A stretch of 64,000 nt of DNA from NCBI GenBank assembly GCA_019828565.1, contig JAHDYR010000069.1:434001-498000 (forward strand). Reading direction: 5' to 3'. The notes beneath the pieces were generated by a model. The model had not been told where the DNA came from and did no database searches. It saw nothing but the letters and a program-made list of their open reading frames with translations. The stretch comes from Carpediemonas membranifera BICM (lineage: Eukaryota > Protista > Fornicata). This document shows, in pieces, positions 6,949 to 54,399 of the stretch (its first letter is position 1; every line of letters begins with the position of its first letter). The position numbers were made by a program, and so were the translations under genes.

Positions 6949-7761
6949 ATGAACGCATGCATTCTCTCAGCTATCTTTCTTCTATTCATTAGTACTGTCT
7001 ATGCCACAGATTGCTTGACCTATGGTACGTAGCCTTCGTTTCTTCATTATTCAGGCATTGTCGTCAACGCCACGGCCCACGATACATACGATAACATCAC
7101 AGTCAGCTACAATGTCGTCCCTTCATGCTGGTACTCGTCCATGGCCTCCGACAGCGTCTACTTCTATCTTTCCGACTCCAATGGCGGCTACATGTCCGAC
7201 GGGACCGACGTCTCCTATCTCGCCAACATTTACTACCCTGAACCGTCTGGCGACACCGTCTTCTTCGACTTCTCTGACTACTTTGGCGACAAGAAGTACA
7301 TTTGCGTGGGTGTAGGCGCCACTGACGCCTACGGCTGCACTGAGAACACTATCACCATCGGCGAGCCGGTCCACTGGGCTGCCCTCGTCCTGGTCGGCTT
7401 CATCGTGCTCCTCTTCTTCTGCTCCCCGTGCCTCGTCTGCTGTGTCATCTCCGTCAAGGTCGTCATCATCGTTGGCGCTTTCATGTTCTGCATCTCTCTC
7501 AGCCAGAAGCGCCACAACAAGTACAAGCAGACCATGCTCTCTGGCCCGGCTCCCCAGGCATACACCTCTATCGGCGGACCTCCCGCCTTCAACCAGGCCT
7601 CCGTCCCCATCCCTACCGCCCAGCAGCCCCAGCAGCACTATCCCACACCCAGCTACCAGCCCGCTACATACGGCCAGACGCCCCAGACGTATGCCCAGGC
7701 CCAGTATAACCCGTACGGCGGCCAGGCCCCGCCCCCGCCTCAGGGTGACAGGTACTACTGA
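6949..7761 (+). CDS. Signal-peptide membrane protein with Cys-rich TM region and Pro/Gln/Tyr-rich tail; 2 exons (6949-7024, 7055-7761)
   Basis: MNACILSAIFLLFISTVYA signal peptide joins the 7141 ORF in frame after removing a 30-nt intron GTACGT...TTCAG (7025-7054) that contains an in-frame stop. Confidence 0.75.
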
Positions 7762-24078: not shown

Positions 24079-25996
24079 ATGGCTGAAACCGAGTTGGATC
24101 AGGGCGAAATTGCGCAAGTACCCGTCGAAAAGGTACAAGAGCCCTCGTATTCCGAGGAATTTGCGGAAGGAACAGCCGAGGTTGTTGAAGAATGCGCACC
24201 AGCCGCTGCAGAGTCAAATGAAGGCGAGGCGCCATCTGAAGACATAGATGAGAGCAATATAGATAACTCCGATGAGCTTGAAGAGAACCCTGTCGCTGAG
24301 GAGGAGCCCGCCGCCGAGGAGGAGGCCAAGACTGAGGAGCCCGCCGAGGAGGAGCCCACCGAGGAGGAGGCCAAGACTGAGGAGCCCGCCGCCGAGGAGC
24401 CCACCGAGGAGGAGGCCAAGACTGAGGAGCCCGCCGCCGAGGAGGAGGCCGCCGAGGAGGAGCCCAAGACTGAGGAGCCCGCCGAGGAGGAGCCCAAGAC
24501 TGAGGAGCCCGCCGAGGAGGAGCCCACCGAGGAGGAGCCCAAGACTGAGGAGCCCGCCGAGGAGGAGCCCACCGAGGAGGAGCCCAAGACTGAGGAGCCC
24601 GCCGCCGAGGAGGAGGCCGCCGAGGAGGAGCCCAAGACTGAGGAGCCCGCCGAGGAGGAGCCCAAGACTGAGGAGCCCGCCGAGGAGGAGCCCACCGAGG
24701 AGGAGCCCAAGACTGAGGAGCCCGCCGCCGAGGAGGAGGCCGCCGAGGAGGAGGCCACCGAGGAGGAGCCCAAGACTGAGGAGCCCGCCGCCGAGGAGGA
24801 GGCCAAGACTGAGGAGCCCGCCGCCGAGGAGGAGCCCAAGACTGAGGAGCCCGCCGCCGAGGAGGAGGCCAAGACTGAGGAGCCCGCCGAGGAGGAGCCC
24901 ACCGAGGAGGAGCCCAAGACTGAGGAGCCCGCCGCCGAGGAGGAGCCCAAGACTGAGGGAGCCCGCCGCCGAGGAGGAGCCCAAGACTGAGGAGCCCGCC
25001 GCCGAGGAGGAGCCCAAGACTGAGGAGCCCGCCGCCGAGGAGGAGCCCAAGACTGAGGAGCCCGCCGCCGAGGAGGAGGCCAAGACTGAGGAGCCCGCCG
25101 CCGAGGAGGAGCCCAAGACTGAGGAGCCCGCCGCCGAGGAGGAGCCCAAGACTGAGGAGCCCGCCGCCGAGGAGGAGGCCAAGACTGAGGAGCCCGCCGA
25201 GGAGGAGCCCGCCGAGGAGGAGCCCACCGAGGAGGAGGCCAAGACTGAGGAGCCCGCCGCCGAGGAGGAGGCCAAGACTGAGGAGCCCGCCGAGGAGGAG
25301 CCCACCGAGGAGGAGGCCAAGACTGAGGAGCCCGCCGAGGAGGAGCCCAAGACTGAGGAGCCCGCCGCCGAGGAGGAGCCCAAGACTGAGGAGCCCACCG
25401 AGGAGGAGCCCAAGACTGAGGAGCCCGCCGCCGAGGAGGAGGCCAAGACTGAGGAGCCCGCCGAGGAGGAGCCCACCGAGGAGGAGGCCAAGACTGAGGA
25501 GCCCGCCGAGGAGGAGCCCAAGACTGAGGAGCCCGCCGAGGAGGAGCCCAAGACTGAGGAGCCCGCCGCCGAGGAGGAGGCCAGGCCATCCCCCGTGCCC
25601 AAGAAGGACGCCCCCCGCCCCGTCGCGATCCCCGCCCCCCACACGCTCATGAACGAGCTGACCATGTCACCGTCCGACATCACGGTCGGGCCCATCAAGC
25701 AGGGCTTCCTGTTCAAGCGGGGTGGCTTCAGAGGCAAGTCGTGGCAAAGGCGGTACTTTGTCCTTCTCCCAGACGAGCTGCTCTGGTTCAAGGCGAAGAC
25801 GACAGAGTACGAGAAGTGCACGAACAAGCTGCCTCTCGGTCAGGTGGCAATGGTCGTGGACGGCGCGGAAGATAACAGCAAGTTCGGCTTTGAGTTGAGG
25901 TCGACCCCGAAGCCGTACTCTTTGGCGGCCGAGAGCGACGAGAGCCGGCGGGAGTGGAGCCAGGCGATCCGCAGATGTATTCCTAAGACCGAGTAA
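24079..25996 (+). CDS. Glu-rich tandem-repeat protein with C-terminal PH domain (one apparent frameshift at ~24958)
   Basis: EEE(P/A)KTEEPA(A) repeats; PH domain KQGFLFKRGG...WQRRYFVL...EWSQAI; the extra G in GACTGAGGGAGCCC switches frame. Confidence 0.85.
24295..25582 (+). repeat. Coding minisatellite of shuffled 15-18-nt modules (GAGGAGGAGCCCAAGACT / GAGGAGCCCGCC[GCC] / GAGGAGGAGCCCACC)
   Basis: Directly visible ~1.3-kb array. Confidence 0.95.
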
Positions 25997-37836: not shown

Positions 37837-40800
37837 TGTGGCCAAATAAAGAGAACTAATGACGAAGTGAGGTTTATTCGAAACCCGATCAAGGGCAAAA
37901 ATGGTTATAACTAAAATTGCCCAACACTTCTCTCTCTTAGAAGAGTGGGTGACACTCGAGATAATAGTCGAGAGCCTCGAGGTCCCTGACCTCGAGGTAG
38001 GGAAGCCATTGGTCGTCCTCGGCACCATAGCCATCCCAGCGGATGAGAAACTCGAAGGAGGTCTTGTTGGGGCCGCCACGGTGGGCCAGGATCTCTTGTA
38101 CAAGGTAGGAGTCCTCGTCCATGGCGACGAGCTCGATGTCAGTGAGGAGGCCATTGGAGACGAAGCGGCGGAGGCGTGTGGCGTGATAGGTCTGGGTGCG
38201 ACGAGTCGCAGGATTGATAACCTCGTAAATGTCGTTCGAGCGGGAAGTTATGGTGTAGGGGCCCATGAGCTTGGGGGTCAACTTGCTGTCGGGACGCGTC
38301 GGGTAGGTTACTAAGACCTGGTCGCCGATGGCAAAGACGTCCGAGGTTGAAGGTCTGATCCTGGTTAAGGCGGGCTGCTTGAACGAGGATCTCCTGGATT
38401 TGGACGATGTCTGGGTGCTCTCCCTCTCCCTGTGACACTACGTCGATGATGCTGCGGTCGAGGTTGACGGCGGTGCCGAAGACGAGGGCAGCGGGTGACA
38501 TGCCAATGCTAGAGTTGGTGGTAGCGTTAAGAAGGCGTTGGACCATGGGCAGGTACAGAGACCACTTGGAGGAGAGTCTGAGTTCAGAGGTCAAGGCGAC
38601 GAGATGACGGTTCACCTCGCGGTTGACCCTCTCGACTAGGCCGTTCGCGCGGTGGTGGTAGGGCAGCGTGACGGTGTGGGCCACGTGCAGGGAGGCCAAG
38701 ATCTCCTTGAAGAGCTTGGCAGTGAACTGGGAGCCGCCATCAGTGCGGACGGTCTGAGGGAATCCGTAGTGGCCGGCGAACTGGATGAATGCGCGGCAGG
38801 CAGACTCGGAGGAAGTTGAAGGGACAGCGACTAGCTCTGTAAAGCGTGAGAAGTTGTCAACCGTGACGATGATAAACTTGTTACCAAAGTCATCCTCCGG
38901 GAAGGGACCCATAGTGTCGATGGAGACGGCCACGAACGGGTCAGAGGAGAACGTAGGACGCAGGGTAGAAGTCGTCTTCTTGGCTGTCTCGCGGACCTTC
39001 TGACAGATGGGGCATGAGGCAATAAAGCCCTTGATGTCATCCAGCATGTTGGTCCATTCGATGCCGCGGAGCTTGAGGCGCTCCATGGTGGTCACCGCGC
39101 CCATATGGCCGGCGACGGGACCATGCACGGACTCAATGTCCACATGATGGTCAGACAGGGAAGTGACAGCCTTGAGACAGCGAGAGAGGACATCTGCGGC
39201 CGCGTTGTCGAGGCCGGGGATGTGATGAATCACGAAGACATACTCTTGGAGACGGAGGCTCCAGCGCACGACCTTCGGGGGTCTCACTGCGCGACATGTA
39301 GATCAAGTTCTTATGATCGGTCTGGACCTCGAAGAACTGGCCTCGGATGAACGGATCGAACTTGGTGATGGCGAAGAAGATTCCATATGCTTCTTGCTCG
39401 ATCGTGGCCCAAGCTGACTCAGTCATCGTGAAGCGGCGCGAGACGAAGGCGACAGGTGCCTCCCTTGCCGGAGACGGGATCTTGCTGCGCGAGGAGAGCG
39501 CCACAGCCGAGCGAAGAAGCGTCGGTCTTGATCACCAGGGGCTTCGAGTAGTCTGGGAAAGATAGGAGGGGTGCCTGGACGATAGCGCGCTTGACGGTGT
39601 CCCAAGCAGTCTGTTCGGACTCACCCCACTCGAAAACGGTCTTGGAGCCGCAGAGGTCGTACAGGGGAGCCATGATACGGGCGAAATCTGCGACATGGTC
39701 ACGGTAATAGTTCGCGAGACCGCAGAAGCTTCGCAGCTCGGAGGGGTTTGACGGAACGGTCATTGAGCCGAGGGCTTCCTTGCGCCAGCTGGAGATGCTG
39801 ATGCCCTGTGAGCAGACCGTGTGGCCGACGAACTCGAGCTCGGTGCGGAGGAAGACGCACTTGCTCAGCTTCAGGCGTAAGTTGTGGGCGCGGACGAGTT
39901 CGAAGACCTGATGCAGAAGGGAGTTGTGGCCCTCGATCGTAGACGCGTGTACGATGACATCATCAAGGTAGCACTCGACCCCGCGGCCCAAGAGTGGAGC
40001 TAAGATCCGCATCATGCCTCGCTGGAAGTAGGAAGGCGCGTTCTTGAGACCGAAGGGGACTCTAACGAACTCGTACAGGCCGTTGTGCGTGGCAAATGCA
40101 GTCCTAGGAACAGCTATTGCGTCGAGGGGGAACTGGTGGTAGCCACTGCGCAGGTCAAGCGTGGTGAAGTACTTGCTGCCATTCAGGCGAGACAAGATGG
40201 ACTTAATGTTCTGCAGGGGGAATCGGAAGTCGCGGCTGACTGAGTTGAGGAGGCGGTAGTCTACGACCATCCTATGTTCACCGTTCGTCTTTGGCACGAC
40301 GAAGCAAGGGGCGGAGTAAGCCGACTCCGATAGGCGGATGATGCCAGCCTCAAGGAGGGCCTCGACCTCTCGATCGATGACCTCAGTCATGGCCGGGGAG
40401 AGCCGGCGAGGGGGAACGTGGGTCGGAGTTTCGTCCGTGACGGCGATCTCCATAGGCTGAACCTTGGCAGGCTCACGAGGGATGGGACCGAAGATGTCTT
40501 CGAACTCGCGAGCGAGGGCTGCGACGTTTTCATCGAGCTCGATCTGGCCATCTTCGTCAAGGGGTGTAACCTCGCCGAGGTCCTGAGGCTCAGTCGCGGG
40601 AGGAGCCAGTAGGTTGAACGTTTGGATCACGTCGAACCCAAGGATGAGGGGCTCACCGGTGTTGAGGACGTGGGCGCTGATAGTACCTCCGACTGAGTGG
40701 GGAGACCTGTTGACCTTGATGTCAAGGAGCGTGCGATGGGCAGACGTGGCGATGCCATTGGCCGTGCTTATCTTGAGCTCATCAGGGATCATGACCAGGC

Positions 40801-41860
40801 CCAGAGACTTGGCCAGCACTGGGCTGATGAAGGATGAGGAGGCGCCTGTGTCGACCAGGGCGTCGACGCGGTCGGTGCTCTGGGGAGCAGGGGAGCCGAC
40901 GGGCGCGAAGGCTCGTACGTTGGTGCTGAGGCGCATGACTGGTCCGCTTGTTGCCATCTTCAGAGAGATGGGCGTCGTCCGGCGGCCCGTAGCGAAGAAG
41001 CCGGGCTTGGACTTGTTGGGGCAGTCAGGCCTAAGGTGGCCGGAGAGGCCGCATCCATGGCAGACAGGCTGCGGCTTGGCAGGGGTACCGGCAGGCTTAT
41101 GGTTGTCTGGTTTGTTGGATGGGAAGTGGGGAGCAGGCGCTGCGGTAGCGTGAGGACGAGTGGGGTGGAAGCTCGGAGGCGGACGTGTGGCCTGAGGGCG
41201 CGGGACCTCGGGCTGACCGAACTCGGCGATGGTGCGCTTGGCCTCAGCCAAGGTCTCGACCTCTTGGAAGGCGGCACGCTTGGCGTCGGCGAGCGTCTCA
41301 GGTTCGGAGGCCTTGACCCGGCGGCGCAGTGAATCTGGGGACAGTCCGCGGATGAAAGTGCGGCGTAGTGTCTTCTCATCGGGGAGGTAAGTGGAACAGA
41401 GGTCCTCGACGCGGTCGAACCTGTCGAGGTAGGCGAGCAGAGCGCTGTTGCTGGCCGTCGTGGAGGACATGGCGGTTGCTTCCAGCTTAGACAGAACGGC
41501 CTGAGTGCTCTTGGGAGCGAATAAAGCGGAGTAGATCGCCGACAGGACGTTTTCATCTGGAAGGTCGTCAAAGTTGTCAATGCGAAGGCGGATCAGGCGT
41601 AAAACACGGCTGGAAATGAGCATACGGACAGATAGTGCTCTGTCGTCGGGAACTTGGGCGGAATAGGCCTCGAACTTGTCGTTGAAGCTGCAGAAGGCCG
41701 TTTCGGAACGAATGTCGTTGAGAAAAGGGGCTGAAATCGTTTGATAGTCCATGGCGGTGAGTAAGCTTACTGTGGCCAAATAAAGAGAACTAATGACGAA
41801 GTGAGGTTTATTCGAAACCCGATCAAGGGCAAAAATGGTTATAACTAAAATTGCCCAACA
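37837..41860 (-). mobile_element. Full-length Ty3/Gypsy chromodomain LTR retrotransposon (element A, 4024 bp)
   Basis: Matching 90-bp TG...CA LTRs at 37837-37926 and 41771-41860; 4-bp TSD GAAC; purine tract at 37927-37938; gag-pol inside. Confidence 0.95.
37937..41752 (-). CDS. Gag-Pol of element A (Zn knuckle, protease, RT, RNase H, integrase, chromodomain), 3 apparent frameshifts
   Basis: CHGCGLSGHLRPDC, VDTGA, YLDD, TDAS, GH...CPIC, D-D-E core, chromodomain FLIRWDGY...DDQW. Confidence 0.9.
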
Positions 41861-42050
41861 GAACTACAGTAATTGGTAATATGGGGAAGGGAGGACGCAT
41901 GGAAGGGAATAAGAGCAGTACAAACAGAGCAAGCAAGAGAAAGTAGAGAGAAGGGGTGAGCCCAAGAACAGACCCTAAACCCTCAGGGGGCAAGCAGAGA
42001 CCCACTCAGCAGTGAAACAGAGACGCCCCACTCCTGGGATCAGTGAGGGG

Positions 42051-42157
42051 TGTAGCCTATGGCTATCTATATATATGATACTGACCATATTCACCATAGA
42101 AGGTTTACCTATAAATTCATTCCCGCTAAAGCCCGGCTCAGGCATCAGTAATTACTG
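42051..42157 (+). mobile_element. Candidate orphan LTR (TGTAG...CATCA, 97 bp) followed by palindrome GTAATTAC
   Basis: TG...CA ends, AT-rich, same CAGTAATTACTG junction as element C; no partner LTR seen. Confidence 0.5.
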
Positions 42158-42160
42158 GCC

Positions 42161-43500
42161 TGTGGTGGGCACAGAACAACAACAATCAATGCGAAGTGTT
42201 TAAATAGGGTCGAACCCTAGTGGTAAATATGGCCTAAATATATACGGGTCAGGTGACCACTACACTGCCCCCATGACTTCCACCATAACATTGTGGATTG
42301 TCATCAAATTGAAAGATATCGATCAAATATAAAAGATCTTGTCGTCCCCAGACCTAATCTAAATTCCTTTTGCGATCTTCGGAAATTTGGTCCTTTTTGT
42401 CAGATTTGGCACAAAATGAGTCATTGCGTCTAAGTTGCCAGTGACGACGGATTGGTACGTAACTATGATCTTCTTCACGCTCTATACTTCATTCTTCTCC
42501 ATTTCTGTCTCTTTCGCGCTTCTGTCTCGCTTCTTCAGTTTCATCGCTTCTCATTAGTTCGTTTCGGCGAGTTCACGCTCTCTCTCTCTCTCTTAGGTGA
42601 TCATTTGCGTTCATTATCATTATCCTCGTGATTGCAATCACTTTTCCTCTTCTTCTCTTCTTTCTTCATCAAACAACATCAACAGCACACGTCTCAGGGG
42701 GATTTACCGGCGTGGCGTCCCTTCCTGAGCGATGGAAGCTTCAATCTCGGATGCTCATTAATGTATGCGTCCAGGGCAGCTAATCCATCGATTTCGCGGC
42801 TGTAATCGGTCCATGTGCCTTCGTCGTCATCGTAGCCCTCCCACAAGAGGAGGAACTGAAGGTTGCCCGCTTGTCGGCGATGGTCAGCAACCTTCCTAAC
42901 CACGTACTCTCCTTCGTTGCGGGCTGCCCAGTGTTTGAGCTCAGCGTCAGTGTAGCTGCCCTCGAACTGGTAAAGCTCAGAGGCATGTACTGTCAGGCGG
43001 TGGTCAGTGGTGAGGTCTTGAACGACGTAGGTGTTGGGGCGGTCGGGATTGGTGGAGATGACCCGGACCGGGCCCCGGGGTACGATGCCTATGGCAGTTT
43101 TGCGCTGGATCATGGCGGCGGATCCAAGGAGATGACTCGCTGGATGACTCTGCGCTGGAGTTTGGCCACCGACAGCGCGTTGTCTGCTCTGTAAACAGCG
43201 TAGGGTGGTACGGAAGTGGTCGACGGTGAGGGAAGGTTGTCTAGTCGGTTCGTGGACGTCCCTGGCGTATAGGACTTCGTACGGCGACAGGTTGGAGGCG
43301 GTTAGAGGTGCGTTGTTGATTATATTCGTGATTCGTGGTAAGGCGTCCTCCCAGTCGTCGTCATGTTCGAGAATCCAGGCGCGTAGGTGTCTCTTCACCT
43401 CTTTGTTCGCTCTTTCAACAGCACCCTGTCCCGCAGGATGATAAGGCGTACCGATCTCGTGTCTTATACCGTGGTCTTGGCAAAATTCTCTGATCATGCT
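42161..43500 (-). mobile_element. 3' half of a Gypsy chromovirus (element D): integrase-chromodomain ORF 42694-43497, 3' UTR, PPT and 3' LTR 42161-42264
   Basis: GTPYHPAGQGAVERANKEV; chromodomain; PPT CATGGGGGCAG then TGTAG...CCACA (104 bp), paralleling element C. Confidence 0.8.
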
Positions 43501-43523
43501 GTTTTTTCTGGTACTTTAACCGG

Positions 43524-45648
43524 TGTTGTGATTTCGTAATCAGTTGATGTGTATTTAGTGTGTGTATTTAATCTAAATGAAGTACCATCCACAGCGCTTT
43601 ATACGCCAAATTGATCAATTTGAGCTATGCAGTCCGATTATGACGCTCGTATAGCAGCACTAGAAGAGACTATAGGTAATCTGGTCTCTCTCGTGAGTTC
43701 TCTCGCGAAGAAGCCCGATGTTCGTGCCCATGATGTCCCTGATTCGGATTCCACGCTTGATTCTTCATGCCTTGAGTCTTTCGAGACTATCTTTAAGCTC
43801 TTCCCCTGCGACTTCAAGCCGGGATCGATCGAACGCCAGATTTTCCATTGCGCTCTCCCCTCCTCGAAGGAAGGGTGGTTCCGCTTGATCCTCGACTATG
43901 ACGATTCGATCGCCGCTTCATTTCTTTCTTCTCTCGTGCCCTCTCCGGCTCGCAGTTGAGCTGGTCTATAACTGAGAAGGAGGCTGCTGCCCTCTACGAA
44001 GCCGTCTTGAAGTTCGACAGTTTCCTCAGAGGAACTTCCTTTGTTGCTGAGGTTGACCATAAGAACCTCACCTTCTTGACTGCTAGCAAGTCGGAGAAGG
44101 TCAACAGATGGAAGAACAGACTGGGAGAGTACATGTTCGAGATCGCTTACATCCCCGGAGAGACTAATGTCCTTGCTGACACTCTGTCTAGGATGTTCCA
44201 ACCGAAAACTTCCTTCTGTAACGCTGTCCAGTCTCGCCTCCCCGTTCTATCTCAAGAGGAGAAGGTTGATCTATTCCGCAAGGTCCACGGCAACGCTCTT
44301 AGTGGTCACAAGGGAGTAGCCGCCACTGTTCAGACCCTCAAAGACCTAGGCCACGAGTGGGAGAACATGTCTTCGGATGCGGCTACCTTCATTTCCAGCT
44401 GTGGCATCTGTCAGAAATTCCGTCTCCAGAAGACTGTCAAGACGCAACTTGGCCACCTTGTCACCGACACCCCTTTTCACACGGTGTCTATCGATGCCAT
44501 TGGTCCCCTGCCAGTAGACGAGTCGTCTGGATCCAAATATGTGCTGACAATTATTGACAACTTCACAAGATGGGTCGAGCTGGTCCCACTGAGTGACCTT
44601 GGCGCTCTCAGCGCTGCCGAGGCCTTGGTGGAAAGAGTGTACTCACGTCACGGTTTGCCCCACTTTTTGCACTCCGACAACGGCTCCCAGTTCGTCAACG
44701 ACCACCATTGCTGCGTTGAACCGGTCTCTGCATATCGAACACACCACCATTTTCCCTTACGTCTCCCAGCAGAACGGTATAGCTGAAAGGGCCAATCGCG
44801 AGGTTAGGCGTCATCTGAAGACCCTCTTGCCTTCCCTTGGAAGACGTTGGAGCGACTGGAGTTCCTGTCTACCTCTGGTCCAGTTTGTCATGAACAACGC
44901 CAAGCACAGGATCATTAACACCACGCCCTACGCCATGCTCTATGGCGATGTCCTTTCCCCATCCAACAGCCTGTTACCGAGGACGTTGACCCCTAACCTT
45001 GACTCTTACGAGTCCACCTCGTCTTATACCTCCGGGTTGCTGAGCAGATTGAGGGAGATCCACGACCTCGCCAGAGCCACCCAGTCCTCTGCCTTGGACT
45101 ACCCCTCAGTAGAGCCTGATGTCTTCAAGCCTGGCGACTATGTCCTGCTGGCCCCACCTAAGGGTCCGCGTAGCAAGACGCTCCCGAATTACCGAGGCCC
45201 ATTCATGGTGAAAGACTCGCTTCCGAACAACCAATACGCCTTACAGGCCTTTTTCAGGGAGGGCGGAGCTGGTGTCACATGTACACCGTCTGAGGAGGTT
45301 CCATCGATCCTTCTTAACTGAGGAGGAGATATCTGAGCTCGCCAAGTTTGATGATGATGATGAATTATACGTTGTCGAATCAGTAGTGAGCCATTCGACC
45401 GATGAGGACGGGAACATCGTTTTCAGACTACGCTGGAGCGGTTACGAGCCTGAAGAAGATACTTATCAGTGCTATGATGAGGATGTGAGAGGAAACGAAC
45501 AAGTTGAGTCGTATATCGACGCACACAAGTTGCGCGGCAAGCTCTTTGGAGAAGACGGAGGTGTTGTGATTTCGTAATCAGTTGATGTGTATTTAGTGTG
45601 TGTATTTAATCTAAATGAAGTACCATCCACAGCGCTTTATACGCCAAA
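43524..45648 (+). mobile_element. Internally deleted (non-autonomous) Gypsy chromovirus (element B, 2125 bp)
   Basis: Matching 87-bp LTRs at 43524-43610 and 45562-45648; 5-bp TSD ACCGG; RNase H, integrase and chromodomain retained; most of gag, protease and RT missing. Confidence 0.92.
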
Positions 45649-45752
45649 ACCGGGACTTAAAGTCCCGGAATAAGTCCCGGAATACATGAAAAAAGGACGA
45701 TTGCAAGAAAAAATGAACGCGCTCAAACAATTAAACTACAGCGTATTACGCC

Positions 45753-46400
45753 TTGCACTTGCACAAGGCATCGTTTAGACATCCGTACAACATGCTGAAG
45801 ACCTTCACTCGCGAAGTCAGTGGCATCGCACAAACTCTCGTCGAAAAACTGTCTCATGGTTCATCTAGGGTCGGGATAGACTGCCGTGCCTCCCCCACTG
45901 GTCCAGTATGCCGAGATAAAATTTCCTGGGTGCGTAAAGATGCGATTTTTGGGAATTGCTCCCAAAGAAGTTTGCTTTTGCTCGCCAACAAAGAAGGCCG
46001 AAAGCAAGTGAGAACATCTGTGTCACATAACAACCTTTGTTCTGCATCAAATAGCAGCAAGATTGCATACGGCATCGAGTATTCTCGAGAAAACACTCAA
46101 AACTTTGCCTGGCAAACGAAAAACGATCCTAAAAGCTAATTTACCTCCAATGTCTCCAAAAAGTGAGCCGCATGATGTGTATTTCTATGATCTTTGTCTT
46201 TCACCTTCAGTTCTTCTTCAAATCATCCATACGCGGCATATCAAGCATTCCTCGTCGTTTGGTCAATTCTGGCAAATCAACAAAAGGTATCCATCGGCTC
46301 AGAAGAGGCTGTGGTGGTAGCCTCGGTCCCGCTTACACCCCCGTGCGTGCCTTGTGATGAAGAAAACTTGTGATATGGCCGGAATGCACTTTATGACAAA
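45753..46400 (+). pseudogene. Degenerate ORF, possibly a class I SAM methyltransferase remnant
   Basis: Frame-broken peptides VHLGSG*, ELLPKKFAFA, VYFYDLCLSP. Confidence 0.25.
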
Positions 46401-47573
46401 CGAATGAAGCGGGCCGAGTTTATCGCCGAAATCAAGCAAATGCGCGTTAAGCTGAGTCACTTGACTGAAATTGATGACTATTACGCCATTGCCGACGACG
46501 TTACTAAGAATTACCTGACAGTTGCCTCAAATTTCTTACTGAAAGCTGTTCTTCGCTCGCAATAGACGTAATTGACTGTAGATTGGTGAAGATAGTGTAA
46601 ACATAAAGAACCCTTTATATACATACTCCGATTATCCATCTATCTATCTTCTCGGGCGAAGATTGTGCCCAGTCCTCCTCATCAGCTCCTCCGCTCGCTG
46701 CTCACTGTTGCACAGATTGCAGATGCAGAGAGTCTCATCCAGACCACTGTCCGCCGTCCTTACACAAATCGTCTTGGCTGTCTCGTCAACAGTGATGAGT
46801 TCCCGGATCTCCTCCGGCTCCTCACAGATACCCTTGACCCATCCACTAAACAGCGCATTCAGCGACTGTTGGCTCGCCTCCTATCCCAGTTGGGTACCTT
46901 AGTTAATAGACGATTTCTCCAGGCGGCACACCGGTCGGCATCAAATAGACACGAGCAGAATGTGACAGACTTACACTGCCTTGCAATCGGCAACACCATA
47001 CCATGCTTTCTCGATGAGCCACGGCGGGTGTAGTGAGCAAGGACACGACCGACCATTGTCTTCTGAGCCAGGAAGCCGAGAACCCAAGATCGATGCTTGT
47101 CCACTCGCAACTGGGCATTGATGAGGAAATCACGTTCGAAGTACTCCTCAAGCAAATAGAACATCGGAAGCCGCAGTTTCGAGTGAACCTTGGGCAGAAC
47201 TGACACCACTGCATTCAGATATAGCGAGCCGGTAAACTTGGGAGAGTAAGTCAGTCTGAGACCATCATTGAGCGTCGTAGCAACCGAGGAGCGACTCGAT
47301 GGAAGGTCATAGAACAACGTCAAGACATGGAACATGATGAACGTAGAAAAGGACGCCGCGTGATGGAAAGCGATTGTCTGGTGTGTCACGTGGTCAGAGG
47401 AGTAATACAACGCCTGTAACTTGGCTGTAAGGAGTATGAAGGGCTGGAGTGACTGGTCAAACTCCTCAAGGTGCTCGTTGACTAGTGTCGCGAGCTTTCG
47501 TCTGTTCCAGCTCTGCTCGTTGCAGCCAGTTGTCCGCGTGAACAGCTTTTCAATCTGCTCAAGTGTGTGCACG

Positions 47574-50500
47574 TGTCATGACGACCTCATTTAATGATCA
47601 GTCTTATTTGGTCAATGATCTCAAACCTGCTTCTAAATTTCACTCTCTCAATTGTTTGGGTACCACAGTAATTACTGCATGCATTTACCTGAAACAAAAC
47701 TCAACAACGCCCCGTTCCTGCGAAAGGCCACCACCAAGTCGTGGTATACTTTCCGTCAAGACTACGAGCAGTATGCTGCCCGTGAAGCCGATCCGATCGT
47801 TGCCTTTGACCTAATCGAAACGCAGGTCCTAGAGGTTCTTAAGATCCGAATCCCTGAACTTGAGGGGTTCCTTGAGTACGCTAATGAAACGCCGGATGAA
47901 GAGCCGGCCGATACCTCTGAACTCAACGAGGCCTTTATCACCATGGTAGACGAGCTGATGCAGCCTCTGGATGAGGTGGACGCTTTAGATCGCTTTAAGG
48001 ACTTGTCGTGCGGCTCTGAGGGTAACCTCATTGACAACATGGCCGCGTATGCCCTGGCGTATAAGCGTCAAGTTCGTAACTGTTGTAAGGTTCGGCCCAC
48101 GGAGAAGCTCATCGTCGATGCCTTTGTTGCTGGCATCAGGTACGGTCGCTTGAAGGAGCGAGTGAATGCTAAGAAGGCGAAGACGCTTGACGAGACGATC
48201 GCCGAGGCATTCATCCAGGCCACGGAAGCAGAGAAGGCTCGCAGAGAGCACCAGCGTGTGGAGCGAGAGAGTGCGACCTCCGCAACGATGACTAAGGCTA
48301 AGGAGAAGTCGGAAACTGCTTGTGAGTACTGCCAGCGCAAGGGTCACACTGCTGATACGTGTTGGAAGCGTAAGCGTGACGAGCGTGAGGGAGTAAAGGG
48401 GCAGAAGTACGTTCATCTTAATGCTTTGGTCGCGGAGGACCGCGACAACAGACCCATTGGCGAGGTGGGCATCCTGGGGAGAGTGTTGGCGTTCCTTTAT
48501 GACACAGGGGCCTCTGCCGACTTTATATCCCAATCCCTCGTCAAAGAGCTCGGCCTAGTCGTCGAGCCCGACCATGCTAAGGTTAAGCTGGCCACTGGTA
48601 CGATTTACAACTCACCCGGCATTGTTAAGTTGAGTGCAGATTTTGGAGTGTTGCCATCTACTGGGCGGAGAACTCAAGCTGCTCTCAATTTGCGGGTGCT
48701 ACCCGGGCTGAAGCCGACATTAGTTATGGGAATATCGACATTAAGTGCGTTGGGGCTAATCACGATCGTCAAGCCGACGATGGAGAATTCTGGAGAGCCA
48801 CACTTCGCGGAGCTTGATGAAGATGAAGTAGACGAGACGTTATTTACCCTTGCTGAAGCGGAGCACGAACTACAGATACGTAGCTTCCCTGAAGAGACTA
48901 ATACCATCCTAAGCAAGTACAAAGACGTTCTCGGCGACATTTCGCAGCCAGCAGACGTTCCACCCTTCGAACTGGTTCTTACAAACCAGAAGGTTATCAA
49001 CATCCCTCCATACCACGTCTCGGCTGAAGAAAGAGAGGATATGCAGCGCCAGACGGCGCAGCTGGAGGATCTGAATGTGATTGAGGAGTCTACGAGCAAC
49101 TATAACAATCCTACGGTGCTTGTATGGAAGCGCGATCGCACCCGCAGGCTCTGCTTGGACTTTCGGCGCCTTAACGACGCGACGGAGGACTTCGATCACG
49201 ACCTCCCTATCATTGACGATCTGGTAGCAAGACTAGAGGGTAAGACCCTCTTCGCTAAGCTGGACCTAAGCAAGGCCTTTCACCAGATTCCTATGACCAA
49301 GAGCTCACGCAGACTAACGGCGTTTACAGTTGGGAAGCGTAAGTACCAGTACAAGCGTTTAGCTTTCGGACTCAAAGGGGCCGCAGCCTTCTGTCAGAAG
49401 ACCCTCGAATCCGTACTGGGCGATGCACTGTGGACACGGTGTCTCGCATATGTAGACGACATAGTAATATTCGGAGAGAACCAGAGAGAGTACCTCGACA
49501 ATCTGGACTATGTCTTGAGAAAGCTCAACTCGGCCAAGTTGAAGCTGAATCTGTCCAAGTCTGAGTTCGGACTGACAGAAATAGAATACTTGGGCTGGCT
49601 TGTGAATGGCGACGGCAAGCGAATCGCGCCTGACCGCCTAGAAGGCATCGACCGCCTAACCAGCCCGAGAGATGTTGCCGGAGTCAGAACCTTACTCGGG
49701 TTCACGAACTATTTTAGCCATATGATTCCGAACTACGGCAATATGATGGAGCCAGTCCTGGCTCTGACGAGAAACCAAGGAAGAGTTCCGTTGGGAGAAG
49801 GCCCAACAAGATGCCCTAGTCGACATCAAAGCGACCCTATCTCAGAACAACATGTTAAGTCACCCCAAGCGTGGCTGCCAATTAATCCTACAAACCGACG
49901 CGAGTGACTACGCTGTCGGGGCAGTTTTGTTACAGATCGAAGACGGGGAGGAGCGTCCGATTGCTTTCTATTCCAAGACACTATCGGATGTTCAAAGAAG
50001 GTGGAGCACCTATGAAAAGGAAGGCTTCGGCATTTATTACGCTATGATCAAGGCCGAGCGGTTCCTAGTAGGCAGGCCGTTTACTGTGAGAACGGACCAC
50101 CGGAATTTGCTGTATATCGCGACAAGCACGAACGCTAAGGTAACTAGATGGCGCATGGCACTGGAAAGGTTCGACTATTCCGTCGTACACGTGCCTGGTC
50201 AAGCGAACGGTGCTGCCGACGCGCTATCTCGCCTATGCGGTGCAACAGTCGAGGCAGATGATCACGCCACGTGGATCTCCGAGGTTCACGGAGGCATACA
50301 CGGCCATCTCGGAGCGAGAGCGACGGTGAACAAGCTTATATCGCTCGGTAGGAGGTGGAGGGGCATGTATAAGGACGCAGAGGAGTTTGTCCAGTCGTGT
50401 CCTGTGTGCCAGGTCACGCGCAAGACGGCCAAGCCCGTCCAACACTTACGCCACCGTACGGCAGGTCGCCTGCCGTTTGATGTCGTGCAGGTAGACACGA

Positions 50501-51919
50501 TCGGACCCATCGCGGAGAGCGAGGGTCTGCGGTACGTGTGCGTGTTAATTGACACGTACTCGAAGCTAACTATGCTGGTCCCCACGCGTTCGACGGACGC
50601 AGATGCCGCGGCAGGGGCAATTTTGGCCTGGGTGGGTCACTACGGAATTCCCCGGGTGATTCACAGCGACGGGGGCAGCCAGTATAGAAATAAGCTGATT
50701 GACGCTCTAATGGAAAGGCTCGGGTCGCAACATCACGTCGGCACGCCTTACCGCCCGGGTTCTCAAGGAATAGTTGAGAGGGTCAACGCCGAGGTTAAGA
50801 GGCATCTAGAGACGCTAATGCTCGATCTGCAGGAGTTTAGATGGACGCGGCTACTACCTTTGGCTCAGTACATCATTAATTCAACATCTGTGGCCAGGAC
50901 AGGCCTATCGCCACTGAATTTGCTTTATAACCAAGACGTGGTCGTAAGACCAGAAGAGATCATGAGCAATGAGAGCAAGATGCCATTTGAGGCCTTCAAG
51001 CGCAGCCTGGAACTACAGAGAGTCATCCAAGACCAGGCGCTGCAACAACAAACACCATCAGAAGCATCACACGTGGCCCTATCGAACAAGCCAGTGCTGG
51101 TAACGACCACTGTCGGCCGCCGCACGAAGCTGGCTGGGCCAATGTGGTGCCAGGGACCCGCAGAGTCGCCGAACGTTTACTACGTGGAGAACCTGACGAC
51201 AGGCGTAGTGGCTAAGGTCCATGCCGAGCGTCTAAGACATTTTGAGTCTGACGCGACAAGGGCTGAGTTGACACGGCTCGCGGCCCAGAGAGTTGACGAA
51301 TATGTCGTAGAAGCGATCGACTCTCACAAATTTGAGGACGGCGTCCTTCACCTACATGTGCTGTGGGAGGGGTACCTCGAGGAAGAGGCGACATGGGAAC
51401 GCTTCAACGCCGACCTTGATGAACTTAGGGCGTTTGAGGAGTACCTCGCAGACAAACCGAGTTTGCGCAGAAAACTCCGAGGTCAAAGGAAATTAGCTTC
51501 CTATAGGCAGCGCTAATAACCAACGGCTCATCAAAAAGCCATTTTGGGGTTTTGCCCAGTTGGTGACCGCAGCCTAGGGGGGGAAGAGCAGAACGTTGGA
51601 ATCTAGTTACTGATATTGGTTATTTCTTATGTTCTACACCATTCTGTGCGCTATTTGTTCGTTTAGAACAGCGTTCTTCAGACTATTGTGCTCAATTGCG
51701 TTTTTGACTTCACTGGAGTCGGTCTGGCGGGTTTTGCATTTCGCCGGACTTGAACCGTTAGAATTTTTGCTGACGGTTGGGAGGCACGTTTGAGCTTGTG
51801 GACGGTTTGGGATCATGGGGGGTAGTGTCATGACGACCTCATTTAATGATCAGTCTTATTTGGTCAATGATCTCAAACCTGCTTCTAAATTTCACTCTCT
51901 CAATTGTTTGGGTACCACA
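47574..51919 (+). mobile_element. Full-length Ty3/Gypsy chromodomain LTR retrotransposon (element C, 4346 bp)
   Basis: Matching 94-bp TG...CA LTRs at 47574-47667 and 51826-51919; 5-bp TSD GCACG; PPT GGGGGGTAG. Confidence 0.96.
47679..51516 (+). CDS. Gag-Pol of element C, one apparent frameshift near 49775
   Basis: CEYCQRKGHTADTC, YDTGA, YVDD, TDASDYAVGAVL, GH...CPVC, chromodomain VLWEGY...ATWE. Confidence 0.92.
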
Positions 51920-54399
51920 GCACGTTCTGACCAGCGTGTTGAACCTTGACAAGGCCAAGCAGCGTCCAGAAGTCCTTCATAAGATAGTGACTCACATGCA
52001 TGACAGGTGGAATGAACGTGACATCAGCGTACTTTGTGAGCACGTGAAGTGGGCCATCTATCTCGTTGGCATAGGTCAGACAGCAGACATCTCGGTGACC
52101 ATCGCGGGACCCAAACCGTGTCATGTCTTTCACGCCACCAGCGTCACGAAGACGGATGCTATCTGCGATTGTCCAGCGATCGCAACGATTGGCAAACGGG
52201 TCGCTTGCGACCTTTCCCATGTGTAGGGAGGAGAATGGAGAGCGGTAGTATCGTCCCCGCTTGACGCCACTAACAATCTGCAACGCTTTGTGATCGCCGC
52301 AGATCCCGAGCAGGCTGATGACAACACGGCTGCGTGGGAGCAACGAACTGTCACCACATGCGAAGGGGATACCAATGAGCTTGTTCATTAGCCGCTGTAC
52401 ATCATCAAAGAACGAAGGAATGAGCTTCTCTGTGCCCTGAAATGTAAGAAGCGTCATGGGTGGGGTAATCTTCTGTGGTAGGGCTGCTCCCTCGCGATCA
52501 ATTATGCGATATTTGACCGCCGTACAGTCGGCCCGATATCCATCAAACCATAGGAGCATCTCAAGACCATAAGCCTCCTGTCGGCTCTCCGGGTTAATAG
52601 TGACGGATTGAACGAACTTGCTTGACTTGATATCGCGCTGAACTCGGTCGGGGAACTTCAGCATGAACTTAATCTGGGCGAAAGGGTCATAGGACAGAGC
52701 GCTGATCACCATCCGGTGAGATTTCTTTGTTCCACGCGGAATGATGCCCATGTTCCGGCATAATCTCTGAATCTCCGGCAGCTTGGATGGATCATCATGC
52801 GAAATGTATAGCCGTGACTCCCCCGATATCTTCTCGAAGTGGTGAGCGAAGAGGCAGTCGTGTTCATCGAGAGTCTCTTGCAGGTCGGTGTGGGTGGTTG
52901 GGTCATATAGGACGTAAAAAGCCTCCGCGACTTCCACGCTACGCGTGAAACCGGCTCCTGCTTGACATTGAAGCTCTTGGTTAGACTCCCCATCACGCCC
53001 AGAGACATCGGGCTGCTCAGGAGTGAACGCGTTGACGTCCTCGATCAGTGTTGGGTCTGATATAACAGATCGTATGGCTGGGATGGACAGCAGGTCATAC
53101 CCAAGATTCTGGAGACTGTCTACCACCGGTGGAGTGTGAATTCAAGGCGAACTCCCATGTCGGAGGCCATTGAAACAAATGCATGGCGGAGTCGGTCGTA
53201 GCGATTCTTCCCTAACTCGACGGCACAGATAATTGCCATGGCCGTGTATAGGCTCTTCGTCTTCGCCTCGTTGTCGACTCGCGTAACAGTCACATGAGCA
53301 GTGCTGTGATTCCTCATCAATGCGCTCCAATCAGCATTAACGACTGCACTACGTAACGTAGCATCACTATGTGTCACCCTCAGTGGACATGACGTCAGGA
53401 AATCTCGGAGAATGCGCAAGCACTGCTCCTTGCTGTCTAAACGAAACGATTTGTCGCGGTTTCGGAGCAGAAACTCGTCTAAGACAGCGGTGATGATAGA
53501 TCCAAGAGAACTGTCCGCCCCATAGGTGATGACGACTTCCCAGTTCTCGAAACGCATTGCTTCAATAGCAATAGGACAAATTTACAAAGTAAATACACAA
53601 ATGTGCTGATGTAGGGCATGGTGGCGGATCTGGCGCTGGTGGCGGACGTGGAGACACTGGGGGTGCTCCACAACCACGTCCACTGCAAGGGTGACTCATG
53701 TAGAGTCGCCCGAAAAGCAGAAAGCATGCGGACAACACAATAGAGGATGATTCAGAGATCGAGACAAGTGGTAAGAGGGTGAGGACTGAGTAAATGGATT
53801 GCAAATGAGTCTTTTTAATGTCTCACCACCTGTTTGGGCCTCAGCGCTGTCGTTCAGGCCAATCCACGTTTGTGGATCCGTGCAGTTTATGGCTTATCGA
53901 CCGGACATCTCCTGAACTGAGCGCCAGGGGGCGGAGGTGGCGTTGGCGTGGGGCGTGGGGCGTGGAGGCGCTGGGGGCGGGGGTGGCGTTGATATTGGGC
54001 AATTACATAAAGTGCACGGTGCTTGGAATTTCATTCCAACCTCAAAATGGCGGGAAAGCATTATTGGAAGGAACTAGTGGCAGCTATGCGGTTCTTTATA
54101 CTGCAAAAGCAACCAGCTGTCGTCAAAAAGCGCGCCATCTACCATCAATAACCAACATCTGCGTTGCACTCCACTGTTCTCGGTCGTTAATGCACAAAAT
54201 CACTAAACAACATCAAAAGGACTGTTCATACGTTATTAAACATTGCTTGCTACTTCTGTTTCATCTTATTGTCGTTTACAGCTGTGTTGTCCTCAACAAA
54301 TGCCAAGACGGAGGCAACGCTGTCCGGGCCATCTGTGTCCATGACACTCACGCCTGTTCTCATTTCACAGATGAAAGACAGCCGAACACATCAAACCAT

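Follow-up and report, generated by a model that had tools for sequence, protein, structure and literature searches.

Self-complementary palindromes at the primer position of Ty3/gypsy chromovirus-type retrotransposons in Carpediemonas membranifera and environmental metagenomes

The start of reverse transcription is a defining step of every retroelement, and to our knowledge only two primer solutions are established for elements with long terminal repeats (LTRs): a host transfer RNA (tRNA) or self-priming of the kind used by Tf1, in which, as Levin's work reportedly has it, RNase H cuts the RNA duplex. The way in which LTRs are formed requires a primer to anneal immediately after the unique 5′ region (U5) of the LTR. 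The closest precedent for the arrangement described here is the Conserved Hairpin Site of the fungal GalEa elements (Ty1/copia; Pezizomycotina), a palindrome that follows the 5′ LTR and takes in its final A (A/CTGATCAGT and A/CTAATTAGT, the slash marking the LTR end) and whose mechanism is unexplained (Donnart et al. 2017, PMC5445492). Here, we describe small LTR retrotransposons in a 64,000-nt stretch of the Carpediemonas membranifera BICM genome (assembly GCA_019828565.1, contig JAHDYR010000069.1, positions 434,001–498,000, forward strand; hereafter ‘the window’, with positions counted from its first base), each of which has a perfect palindrome, and no tRNA-type primer-binding site (PBS), at its 5′ LTR junction.

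The part of the window between 37.8 and 52 kb is a nest of such elements. A direct-repeat search of the window returned three LTR pairs of 87–94 nt, the copies of which match over the whole LTR length (the direct-repeat figure of 96% for element C takes in flank outside the LTR; the C LTRs proper match over their full length), and LTR ends were set by LTR–LTR comparison together with target-site duplications (TSDs). The elements are of Ty3/gypsy chromovirus type and 4.0–4.3 kb in size (B is a 2.1-kb deleted derivative), with the gypsy-type domain order gag, protease (PR), reverse transcriptase (RT), RNase H (RH), and integrase (IN) by Pfam. A C-terminal chromodomain match was obtained in C and in a fragment, D; the second open reading frame (ORF2) of A gave no Chromo match at the Pfam threshold used. 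The LTRs are direct, run from TG to CA, and are bounded by TSDs in the 4–6-bp range of Ty3/gypsy chromoviruses, with the exception of B, the LTR of which ends in CAAA. Polypurine tracts (PPTs) lie directly 5′ of the 3′ LTRs and are ordinary; the minus-strand priming site is the sole unusual feature. The features of the three elements are as follows:

37837–41860, minus strand: element A, complete and small, of Ty3/gypsy chromovirus type (gag-PR-RT, with RH-IN following in a second frame; LTR match, Pfam PR, RVT_1, RNase H, and rve, TSD GTTC)
41771–41860, minus strand: A 5′ LTR (TGTTGGGC...GGCCACA; LTR pair and TSD)
41760–41771, minus strand: A palindrome AGTAAGCTTACT, the first base of which is the LTR-terminal A (inner 10-mer GTAAGCTTAC; palindrome scan)
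37837–37926, minus strand: A 3′ LTR, with PPT AAGAGAGAGAAG before it (LTR pair)
43524–45648, plus strand: element B, internally deleted, with the gag start joined to RH-IN-chromo (whole-length LTR match, TSD ACCGG at 43519–43523 and 45649–45653)
43524–43610 and 45562–45648, plus strand: B LTR pair (TSD ACCGG)
43607–43622, plus strand: B 16-nt palindrome CAAATTGATCAATTTG across the 5′ LTR end at 43610 (same 16-mer, in the same place, in metagenome locus L020)
47574–51919, plus strand: element C, complete (gag-PR-RT, then RH-IN-chromodomain; LTR pair, Pfam, TSD GCACG)
47574–47667, plus strand: C 5′ LTR (TGTCATG...ACCACA; LTR pair and TSDs)
47666–47677, plus strand: C palindrome CAGTAATTACTG at the 5′ LTR junction (palindrome scan)
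51826–51919, plus strand: C 3′ LTR, with PPT GGGGGGTAG before it and no palindrome after it (LTR pair)

At the 5′ junctions of A, B, and C, the last 1–4 bases of the LTR and the first 8–12 internal bases together form a perfect palindrome of 12–16 nt. With slashes setting off the inner sequence, the junctions read CCACA/GTAAGCTTAC/T in A, CCAAA/TTGATCAA/TTTG in B, and CCACA/GTAATTAC/TG in C. The palindrome is not present after the 3′ LTRs of these three elements and is therefore internal sequence. No TGG follows the LTR of A, B, or C, and the first ATG, that of gag, lies 18 (A), 16 (B), and 11 (C) nt past the LTR. Perfect palindromes of at least 12 nt number 20 in the 64-kb window (3.1e-4 per centre), and among them are four sites singled out in an earlier note on this DNA. 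Re-reading of the window bore out the coordinates and sequences given there for all four, the placement of palindromes at the 5′ LTR junctions of A, B, and C (LTR ends now being fixed by LTR pairs and TSDs), and the statement that a tRNA-type TGG is missing and an ATG follows 11–18 nt after the LTR. That the palindrome begins at the first base after the LTR needs amending: it does sit at the boundary, but the duplex always includes the LTR-terminal A and hence does not start exactly there. Element C has, in addition, a second perfect palindrome of 8 nt (TGCATGCA, window 47678–47685) directly after the first, which holds the gag ATG (47679).

LTR pairs matching over their whole length and the interruption by C of a 643-aa ORF together indicate that the elements were recently active and the site therefore functional. 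Excision of C and one TSD copy restores this ORF as a continuous frame on the minus strand (window 46700–47573 and 51925–53300); it had no Pfam match, and C has recently split either a gene or another element. A second genomic copy of C (L001:9634–13937) is 98.7% identical and has the TSD GGCGC, and the closest protein match of C is likewise from Carpediemonas membranifera (97% identity). Right at the 3′ end of that second copy starts an array of tandem repeats, each about 1083 bp long (L001:13938–21584). The two LTR copies of B (43524–45648) are identical despite the internal deletion, which suggests recent mobilisation in trans; the metagenome locus L020 is a full-length relative with an identical 16-nt palindrome. 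RT and RH-IN stand in different frames, with ORFs overlapping in C (49852–49907) and adjacent in A (39287–39419).

Relatives were found by exhaustive protein search, cluster look-ups, and contig retrieval; a word-indexed protein search with C ORF1 gave four matches only, and a protein search with the gag region of P0008 returned only the query itself. Four more C. membranifera families (E, F, G, and H) have the same junction arrangement; in each, the two LTRs match from end to end, and a TSD could be read (that of F in L005, L003 differing at one of five bases; that of H only 4 bp). Unlike A and C, the families E, F, and G have single-ORF annotations. The distance from the LTR to the first ATG is 11–18 nt in six of the seven C. 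membranifera families and 33 nt in G, and the junction is identical between independent genomic copies having different TSDs. About 17 further elements with the same arrangement come from environmental metagenomes, those listed below from L020 onwards out of a scan of metagenome contigs; the contigs of GCA_002919055.1 (PPCM01) are present in the metagenome collection, and this assembly was therefore treated as a metagenome and not as one organism. The junctions read:

E: CA/GTAATTAC/TG
F (two copies): CA/GTAATATTAC/TG
G (two copies): CA/GTTATATAAC/TT
H (nested in G, minus strand): CA/GTTATATAAC/TG
L010 (family J): CA/GTAATATTAC/TG
L013 (family K): CA/GAAATATTTC/TG
L012: CA/GTAAATTTAC/TA
L007: CA/ATATTAATAT/TA
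L020, identical to B: CAAA/TTGATCAA/TTTG
L035, LTR pair defined: CA/GTTTCGAAAC/TG
L032: CA/GTGATCAC/T
L015, L021, and L080: CA/GTATTAATAC/T
L016: CA/GTGTATACAC/T
L023: CA/GAAATTTC/TG
L033: CA/ATTATATAAT/T
L050: CA/GTGTACAC/T
L043: CA/AATATATATT/T
L027: CA/ATATATATAT/T
L071: CA/GTTATAAC/TG

Three loci were set aside: L009, which has no 3′ LTR to fix the LTR end (and the neighbouring genes of which had no Pfam match), L008, which has no detectable LTR pair, and L036. The last has a 16-nt palindrome (ATTAATTCGAATTAAT) in both terminal repeats (L036:101–136 and 7215–7250), flanked by mutually inverted sequence, and a 2190-aa ORF; it looks like another terminal architecture, a larger inverted arrangement. 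More distant chromoviruses with well-defined LTR pairs (L055, L057/59, L069, L072, L078, L084, L087, L090, and L092) have sites beginning with TGG 1–3 nt after the LTR, and the method therefore detects canonical sites where they are present.

Across 24 elements, there are about 18 different palindromes, and every change is mirrored. Eight 14-nt junctions were aligned and their mirror pairing scored as a helix: in 100% of the distinct sequences, all six inner positions pair with their mirror partners, five of the seven mirror pairs show double (both-side) compensatory changes, and the covariation score was reached by none of 500 shuffles. When the register is slid, pairing drops to 26–51%. Unpaired cells are confined to the outermost C-G pair, and the LTR-terminal A always pairs with T. 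This invariant outer A-T pair suggests that the functional duplex would include the last LTR base.

On a tree of pol, the families are separated by deep divergence (terminal branches of about 0.5–1.7 changes per site), and even sister families have different palindromes (GTTATATAAC in G, GAAATATTTC in K). In a 33-row version of this tree—which leaves out 59 of the 80 metagenome loci (junction unclassified), B (no RT), D, and a further truncated element, X, and in which A, C, and H are each represented by two ORFs linked through the letter X—all 24 palindrome elements fall on one side of a branch (Shimodaira–Hasegawa-like approximate likelihood-ratio test [SH-aLRT] 98), and all nine TGG elements on the other. 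Palindrome versus TGG site is a single change of state on this tree. All palindrome elements placed on the tree, H included, make up one clade, and similarity among A, C, E, F, and G is also seen at the gag N-terminus. Homology of the palindromes follows from this: one ancestral site has changed in sequence from family to family and kept its symmetry.

Because the primer must anneal after U5, the palindrome, TSD-anchored in seven C. membranifera families, occupies the primer position, and with the ATG so close to the LTR in six of them, room for another primer site is lacking. We propose, with a confidence that stops somewhat short of even, that the palindrome is the minus-strand primer site and acts by self-complementarity and not by complementarity to a host tRNA. 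A tRNA-type TGG is absent at all 11 anchored junctions. ARAGORN found no tRNA in the window and, in 110 kb of further C. membranifera DNA, only tRNA-Ala(CGC) (L005:2532–2603, 2.7 kb upstream of an F element) and tRNA-Pro(AGG) (L006:4907–4978, 530 bp upstream of a G element), and an Rfam search of the window was negative. Five different palindromes stand side by side in this one genome, and a host primer is implausible because five RNAs would be needed, each with a palindromic end. A host primer of the tRNA type is accordingly taken as unlikely, given these palindromes and the junctions without TGG, and the five coexisting palindromes likewise argue against pairing with an internal stretch of a tRNA (half-tRNA priming, as in copia), the host tRNA genes inspected numbering two. 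The Tf1 scheme is ruled out: no LTR segment is complementary to the site, the best match being 3–7 nt and equal to that of shuffled LTRs in 10 of 11 families. Also rejected was the idea that the palindrome is regenerated automatically in each cycle and not selected, as we found no replication scheme that creates it at the inner LTR edge. What these junctions do have is a position at the LTR boundary, symmetry kept by compensatory change, and restriction to one clade, and complementarity of the tRNA or Tf1 type is absent from them.

Self-complementarity could act within one molecule or between two. Self-priming by fold-back in cis, through a local hairpin or a downstream complement and with a cut that leaves the 3′ end folded on U5, has a model in the GalEa proposal, where a complementary CHSeq2 lies 12–41 bp downstream of the palindrome (PMC5445492), and minimum-free-energy folds of the leader do render the palindrome as a hairpin of 4–6 bp with a 4-nt loop. 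We nevertheless consider it improbable. In none of 11 families does a second complementary copy occur in the 120 nt that follow (best matches equal those of shuffles); the hairpins are weak or absent, with predicted energies of 0 to −2.6 kcal/mol versus −7 to −18 kcal/mol for the homoduplex; and a hairpin of the full palindrome puts the 3′ end within the LTR and not at its boundary. The central tetramers (AATT, AGCT, ATAT, TTAA, and GATC, with TATA, GTAC, and CGAA in metagenome palindromes) are self-complementary in all but L035 (CGAA), and every palindrome is perfect through the centre. A hairpin is unable to pair these central bases, yet the symmetry runs through them, and two-molecule pairing is therefore favoured; pairing between two copies of the same RNA appears to be the simplest reading.

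Pairing between two RNAs is also what the main rival explanation assumes, namely that the palindrome is only a site of genome dimerisation or packaging (a dimerisation initiation site, DIS) that chances to fall at the U5 edge of such compact elements, with a short host RNA or tRNA fragment having few complementary bases as the primer. We think this rather unlikely. The primer must anneal at the LTR boundary, where only the palindrome is conserved and beyond which the sequence varies by family; the ATG spacing given above (11–18 nt in six of seven families, 33 nt in G) speaks against it, and the five palindromes of one genome would call for five host primers. Known DISs, moreover, are 6 nt long and sit in a hairpin loop with a separate PBS alongside, none of which is true here. 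In its favour, intermolecular symmetry is exactly a DIS requirement, the look at host tRNAs was limited to two genes, and short palindromes in the 5′ leader dimerise genomic RNA in Ty3, Ty1, and retroviruses such as HIV-1 (PMC11381356; PMC6844567). A further reading, on which a dimeric protein recognises the symmetric site as duplex DNA (a promoter, initiator, regulatory, integrase, or host-factor site, for instance), we judge very improbable. Perfect central symmetry would suit a two-fold symmetric protein site just as well, the ATG comes shortly after the site in elements whose leaders are expected to be very short, and motifs of this type adjoin the nested insertions A and D, but the half-sites vary widely (GTAA, GTTA, GAAA, ATAT, GTGT, GTTTC, TTGA) and in length (4–5 nt), which is how a base-paired helix evolves and not the site of a single protein, and the missing primer site would be left unexplained. 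To chance or an assembly artefact, we give next to no credence; the small sample of three in the window speaks for it and nothing else does, whereas a palindrome of at least 12 nt, which occurs at 3.1e-4 per position, stands at every clade junction examined, with junctions identical in independent copies that differ in TSD and recurring in unrelated assemblies.

Under the proposed priming through self-complementarity, two genomic RNAs, or one such RNA and a leader fragment of another copy, would pair via the palindrome of 10–16 nt at the U5 end, and the resulting short RNA duplex would be comparable in length to the 11-bp primer/PBS duplex of Tf1. The RNase H of the element would then cleave one of the two paired strands at the 3′ border of the helix, as the Tf1 enzyme reportedly cuts its RNA duplex, the precedent for cleavage of this kind by an RT-RNase H; self-priming by Tf1 is itself documented (PMC5445492 and PMC6317226). 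The cut would leave a paired 3′-OH at the LTR boundary, the 3′ end of the leader fragment would prime minus-strand strong-stop DNA on the partner RNA, and the same duplex would double as the dimer linkage. The RNA–RNA pairing, the cleavage, and the use of the cut end as primer are what we infer from the junctions. A broader claim, which we regard as possible but hold with more doubt than conviction, is that this would be a third mode of minus-strand priming for LTR retroelements, in which two genomic RNAs pair via the palindrome and one is cut to prime the other, so that priming is coupled to dimerisation; that it defines a widespread lineage of protist chromoviruses; and that it may have arisen again in fungal GalEa copia elements.

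Several points weigh against priming of this kind. The model is drawn from sequence analysis, and most metagenome contigs come without an independently defined LTR end, the order read in them being an end in CA, the palindrome, a short leader, and the polyprotein ATG. The tRNA check covered two host genes, and a short tRNA-fragment match is opposed by logic and not by an exhaustive screen. A long leader-derived primer would trouble plus-strand transfer and would call for extra assumptions, namely primer trimming by RNase H and one partner staying uncut, the latter because the minus strand must keep the site for plus-strand transfer. Finally, the palindromes are short and AT-rich and could be a dimerisation signal alone.

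Much of what the earlier note had argued from three elements holds in the wider sample. It had maintained that symmetry is conserved while sequence is not, and this agrees with the double changes in five of seven pairs and the complete pairing of the six inner ones; it had looked to further elements for palindromes and compensatory changes, which are found in families E–H and in the metagenome relatives; and it had named a complement at the transcript's 5′ end as a ground for refutation, whereas LTR matches are shuffle-like in 10 of 11 families. Its preference for two-molecule pairing over local fold-back also stands, the central four bases being self-complementary and the homoduplex far stronger than the hairpin. 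By contrast, the elements are related and their LTRs not fully ‘unrelated’, with similar gag N-termini and a common clade on the tree, and the idea that nothing similar was known falls to the GalEa palindrome after the 5′ LTR (PMC5445492). The interpretation as a whole is supported as far as sequence analysis reaches and is unproven beyond.

The fourth site of the window lies between A and B, beside two truncated elements:

42161–43530, minus strand: element D, a truncated IN-chromodomain fragment with a 3′ LTR (42161–42264; protein 46–47% identical to families F and G)
42146–42157, plus strand: fourth palindrome CAGTAATTACTG in the D flank, 3 nt outside the D 3′ LTR, the probable 5′ junction of truncated element X
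42051–42147, plus strand: X LTR-like stretch (TGTAGCC...GGCATCA), with the box TAAATTCATTC 25 nt from its end (single copy)

The D 3′ LTR has the PPT CATGGGGGCAG before it and is homologous to the family F LTR. Since the fourth palindrome is located 3 nt beyond this LTR, it belongs to another, truncated element, X, the LTR-like stretch of which has a TAAAT..CAYTC box as in A, C, and E, at the same distance from the end. The site, put forward in the earlier note as the junction of a candidate fourth LTR, is probably the 5′ junction of X: the palindrome is real and the stretch at 42051–42147 fits in orientation, while the LTR, present as a single LTR-like copy, is only partly resolved. More generally, most families (A, C, E, X; F as L003, G as L006, H as L004, J as L010, and K as L013) have TAAA(T) followed by CAYTY at 22–40 nt ahead of the 3′ end of the LTR, and TTGGTCAATGATC is present in the LTRs of both C and G. 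The A/T box, with TTGGTCAATGATC, is probably an initiator and/or poly(A) signal, in which case the repeat (R) and U5 regions would together span only about 20–45 nt.

Two insertions in the nest abut palindrome-like motifs. Element A (TSD GAAC) was inserted next to TACAGTAATTGG, a degenerate copy of CAGTAATTAC (window 41861–41876), and the putative D TSD, TGGCC, overlaps the final 2 nt of the X palindrome (window 42156–42160). This may reflect an insertion preference, although with n=2 the observation is anecdotal. Elsewhere in the window, positions 24200–25650 are densely filled with tandem repeats having periods of 15 and 33 nt (GC 0.67, AT skew 0.52) and lie inside long ORFs on both strands.

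The elements described here form a whole clade without tRNA-type or Tf1-type complementarity at the junction, which has kept a self-complementary site instead, the evolution of which points to two-molecule pairing. Should the proposed priming be true, genome dimerisation and priming would be one event, and the element would be freed from a host primer, which could explain its spread across distant protists; the unexplained GalEa palindrome would also gain a testable mechanism. For annotation, LTR tools that insist on a tRNA-type PBS may miss part of the lineage or misclassify it.

Among known systems, the tRNA-primed chromoviruses (e.g. L055, L069, L078, L084, and L090) are the nearest outgroups on the pol tree and share the domain order and the LTR/PPT architecture, but have TGG 1–3 nt after the LTR and no palindrome. 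The DIS of retroviruses, Ty1, and Ty3 (PMC11381356; PMC6844567) is likewise a self-complementary 5′ leader sequence that pairs two genomic RNAs and has compensatory variants; it is about 6 nt long, in a hairpin loop, and accompanied by a separate tRNA PBS, whereas the palindromes here are 10–16 nt long, have no flanking stem, and are placed at the PBS position. The Tf1/sushi elements (the Tf1, Tf2, and Tcn1 clade) are chromodomain Ty3/gypsy elements without a tRNA primer and are primed by their own RNA through a duplex of about 11 bp next to the LTR, with RNase H cleaving the RNA duplex. The PBS of Tf1, however, is no palindrome and has as its cis partner the 5′-terminal 11 nt of the transcript; the site described here pairs with itself and has no LTR complement, and a second molecule is therefore implied.

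Searches of the open-access literature gave no report of a palindromic PBS in gypsy elements or chromoviruses, the GalEa paper being the sole find. As here, GalEa elements are without a tRNA-type PBS, their palindrome includes the LTR-terminal A, and its variants stay symmetric; their cores TGATCA and TAATTA even recur in our elements (in B, TTGATCAA, and in C and E, GTAATTAC, respectively). They differ in superfamily and host—copia in fungi as opposed to gypsy domain order in protists—and in having CHSeq2 12–41 bp downstream, with which the palindrome forms a hairpin and which has no counterpart here. The palindromes of the present lineage are, in turn, longer and far more varied than those of GalEa.

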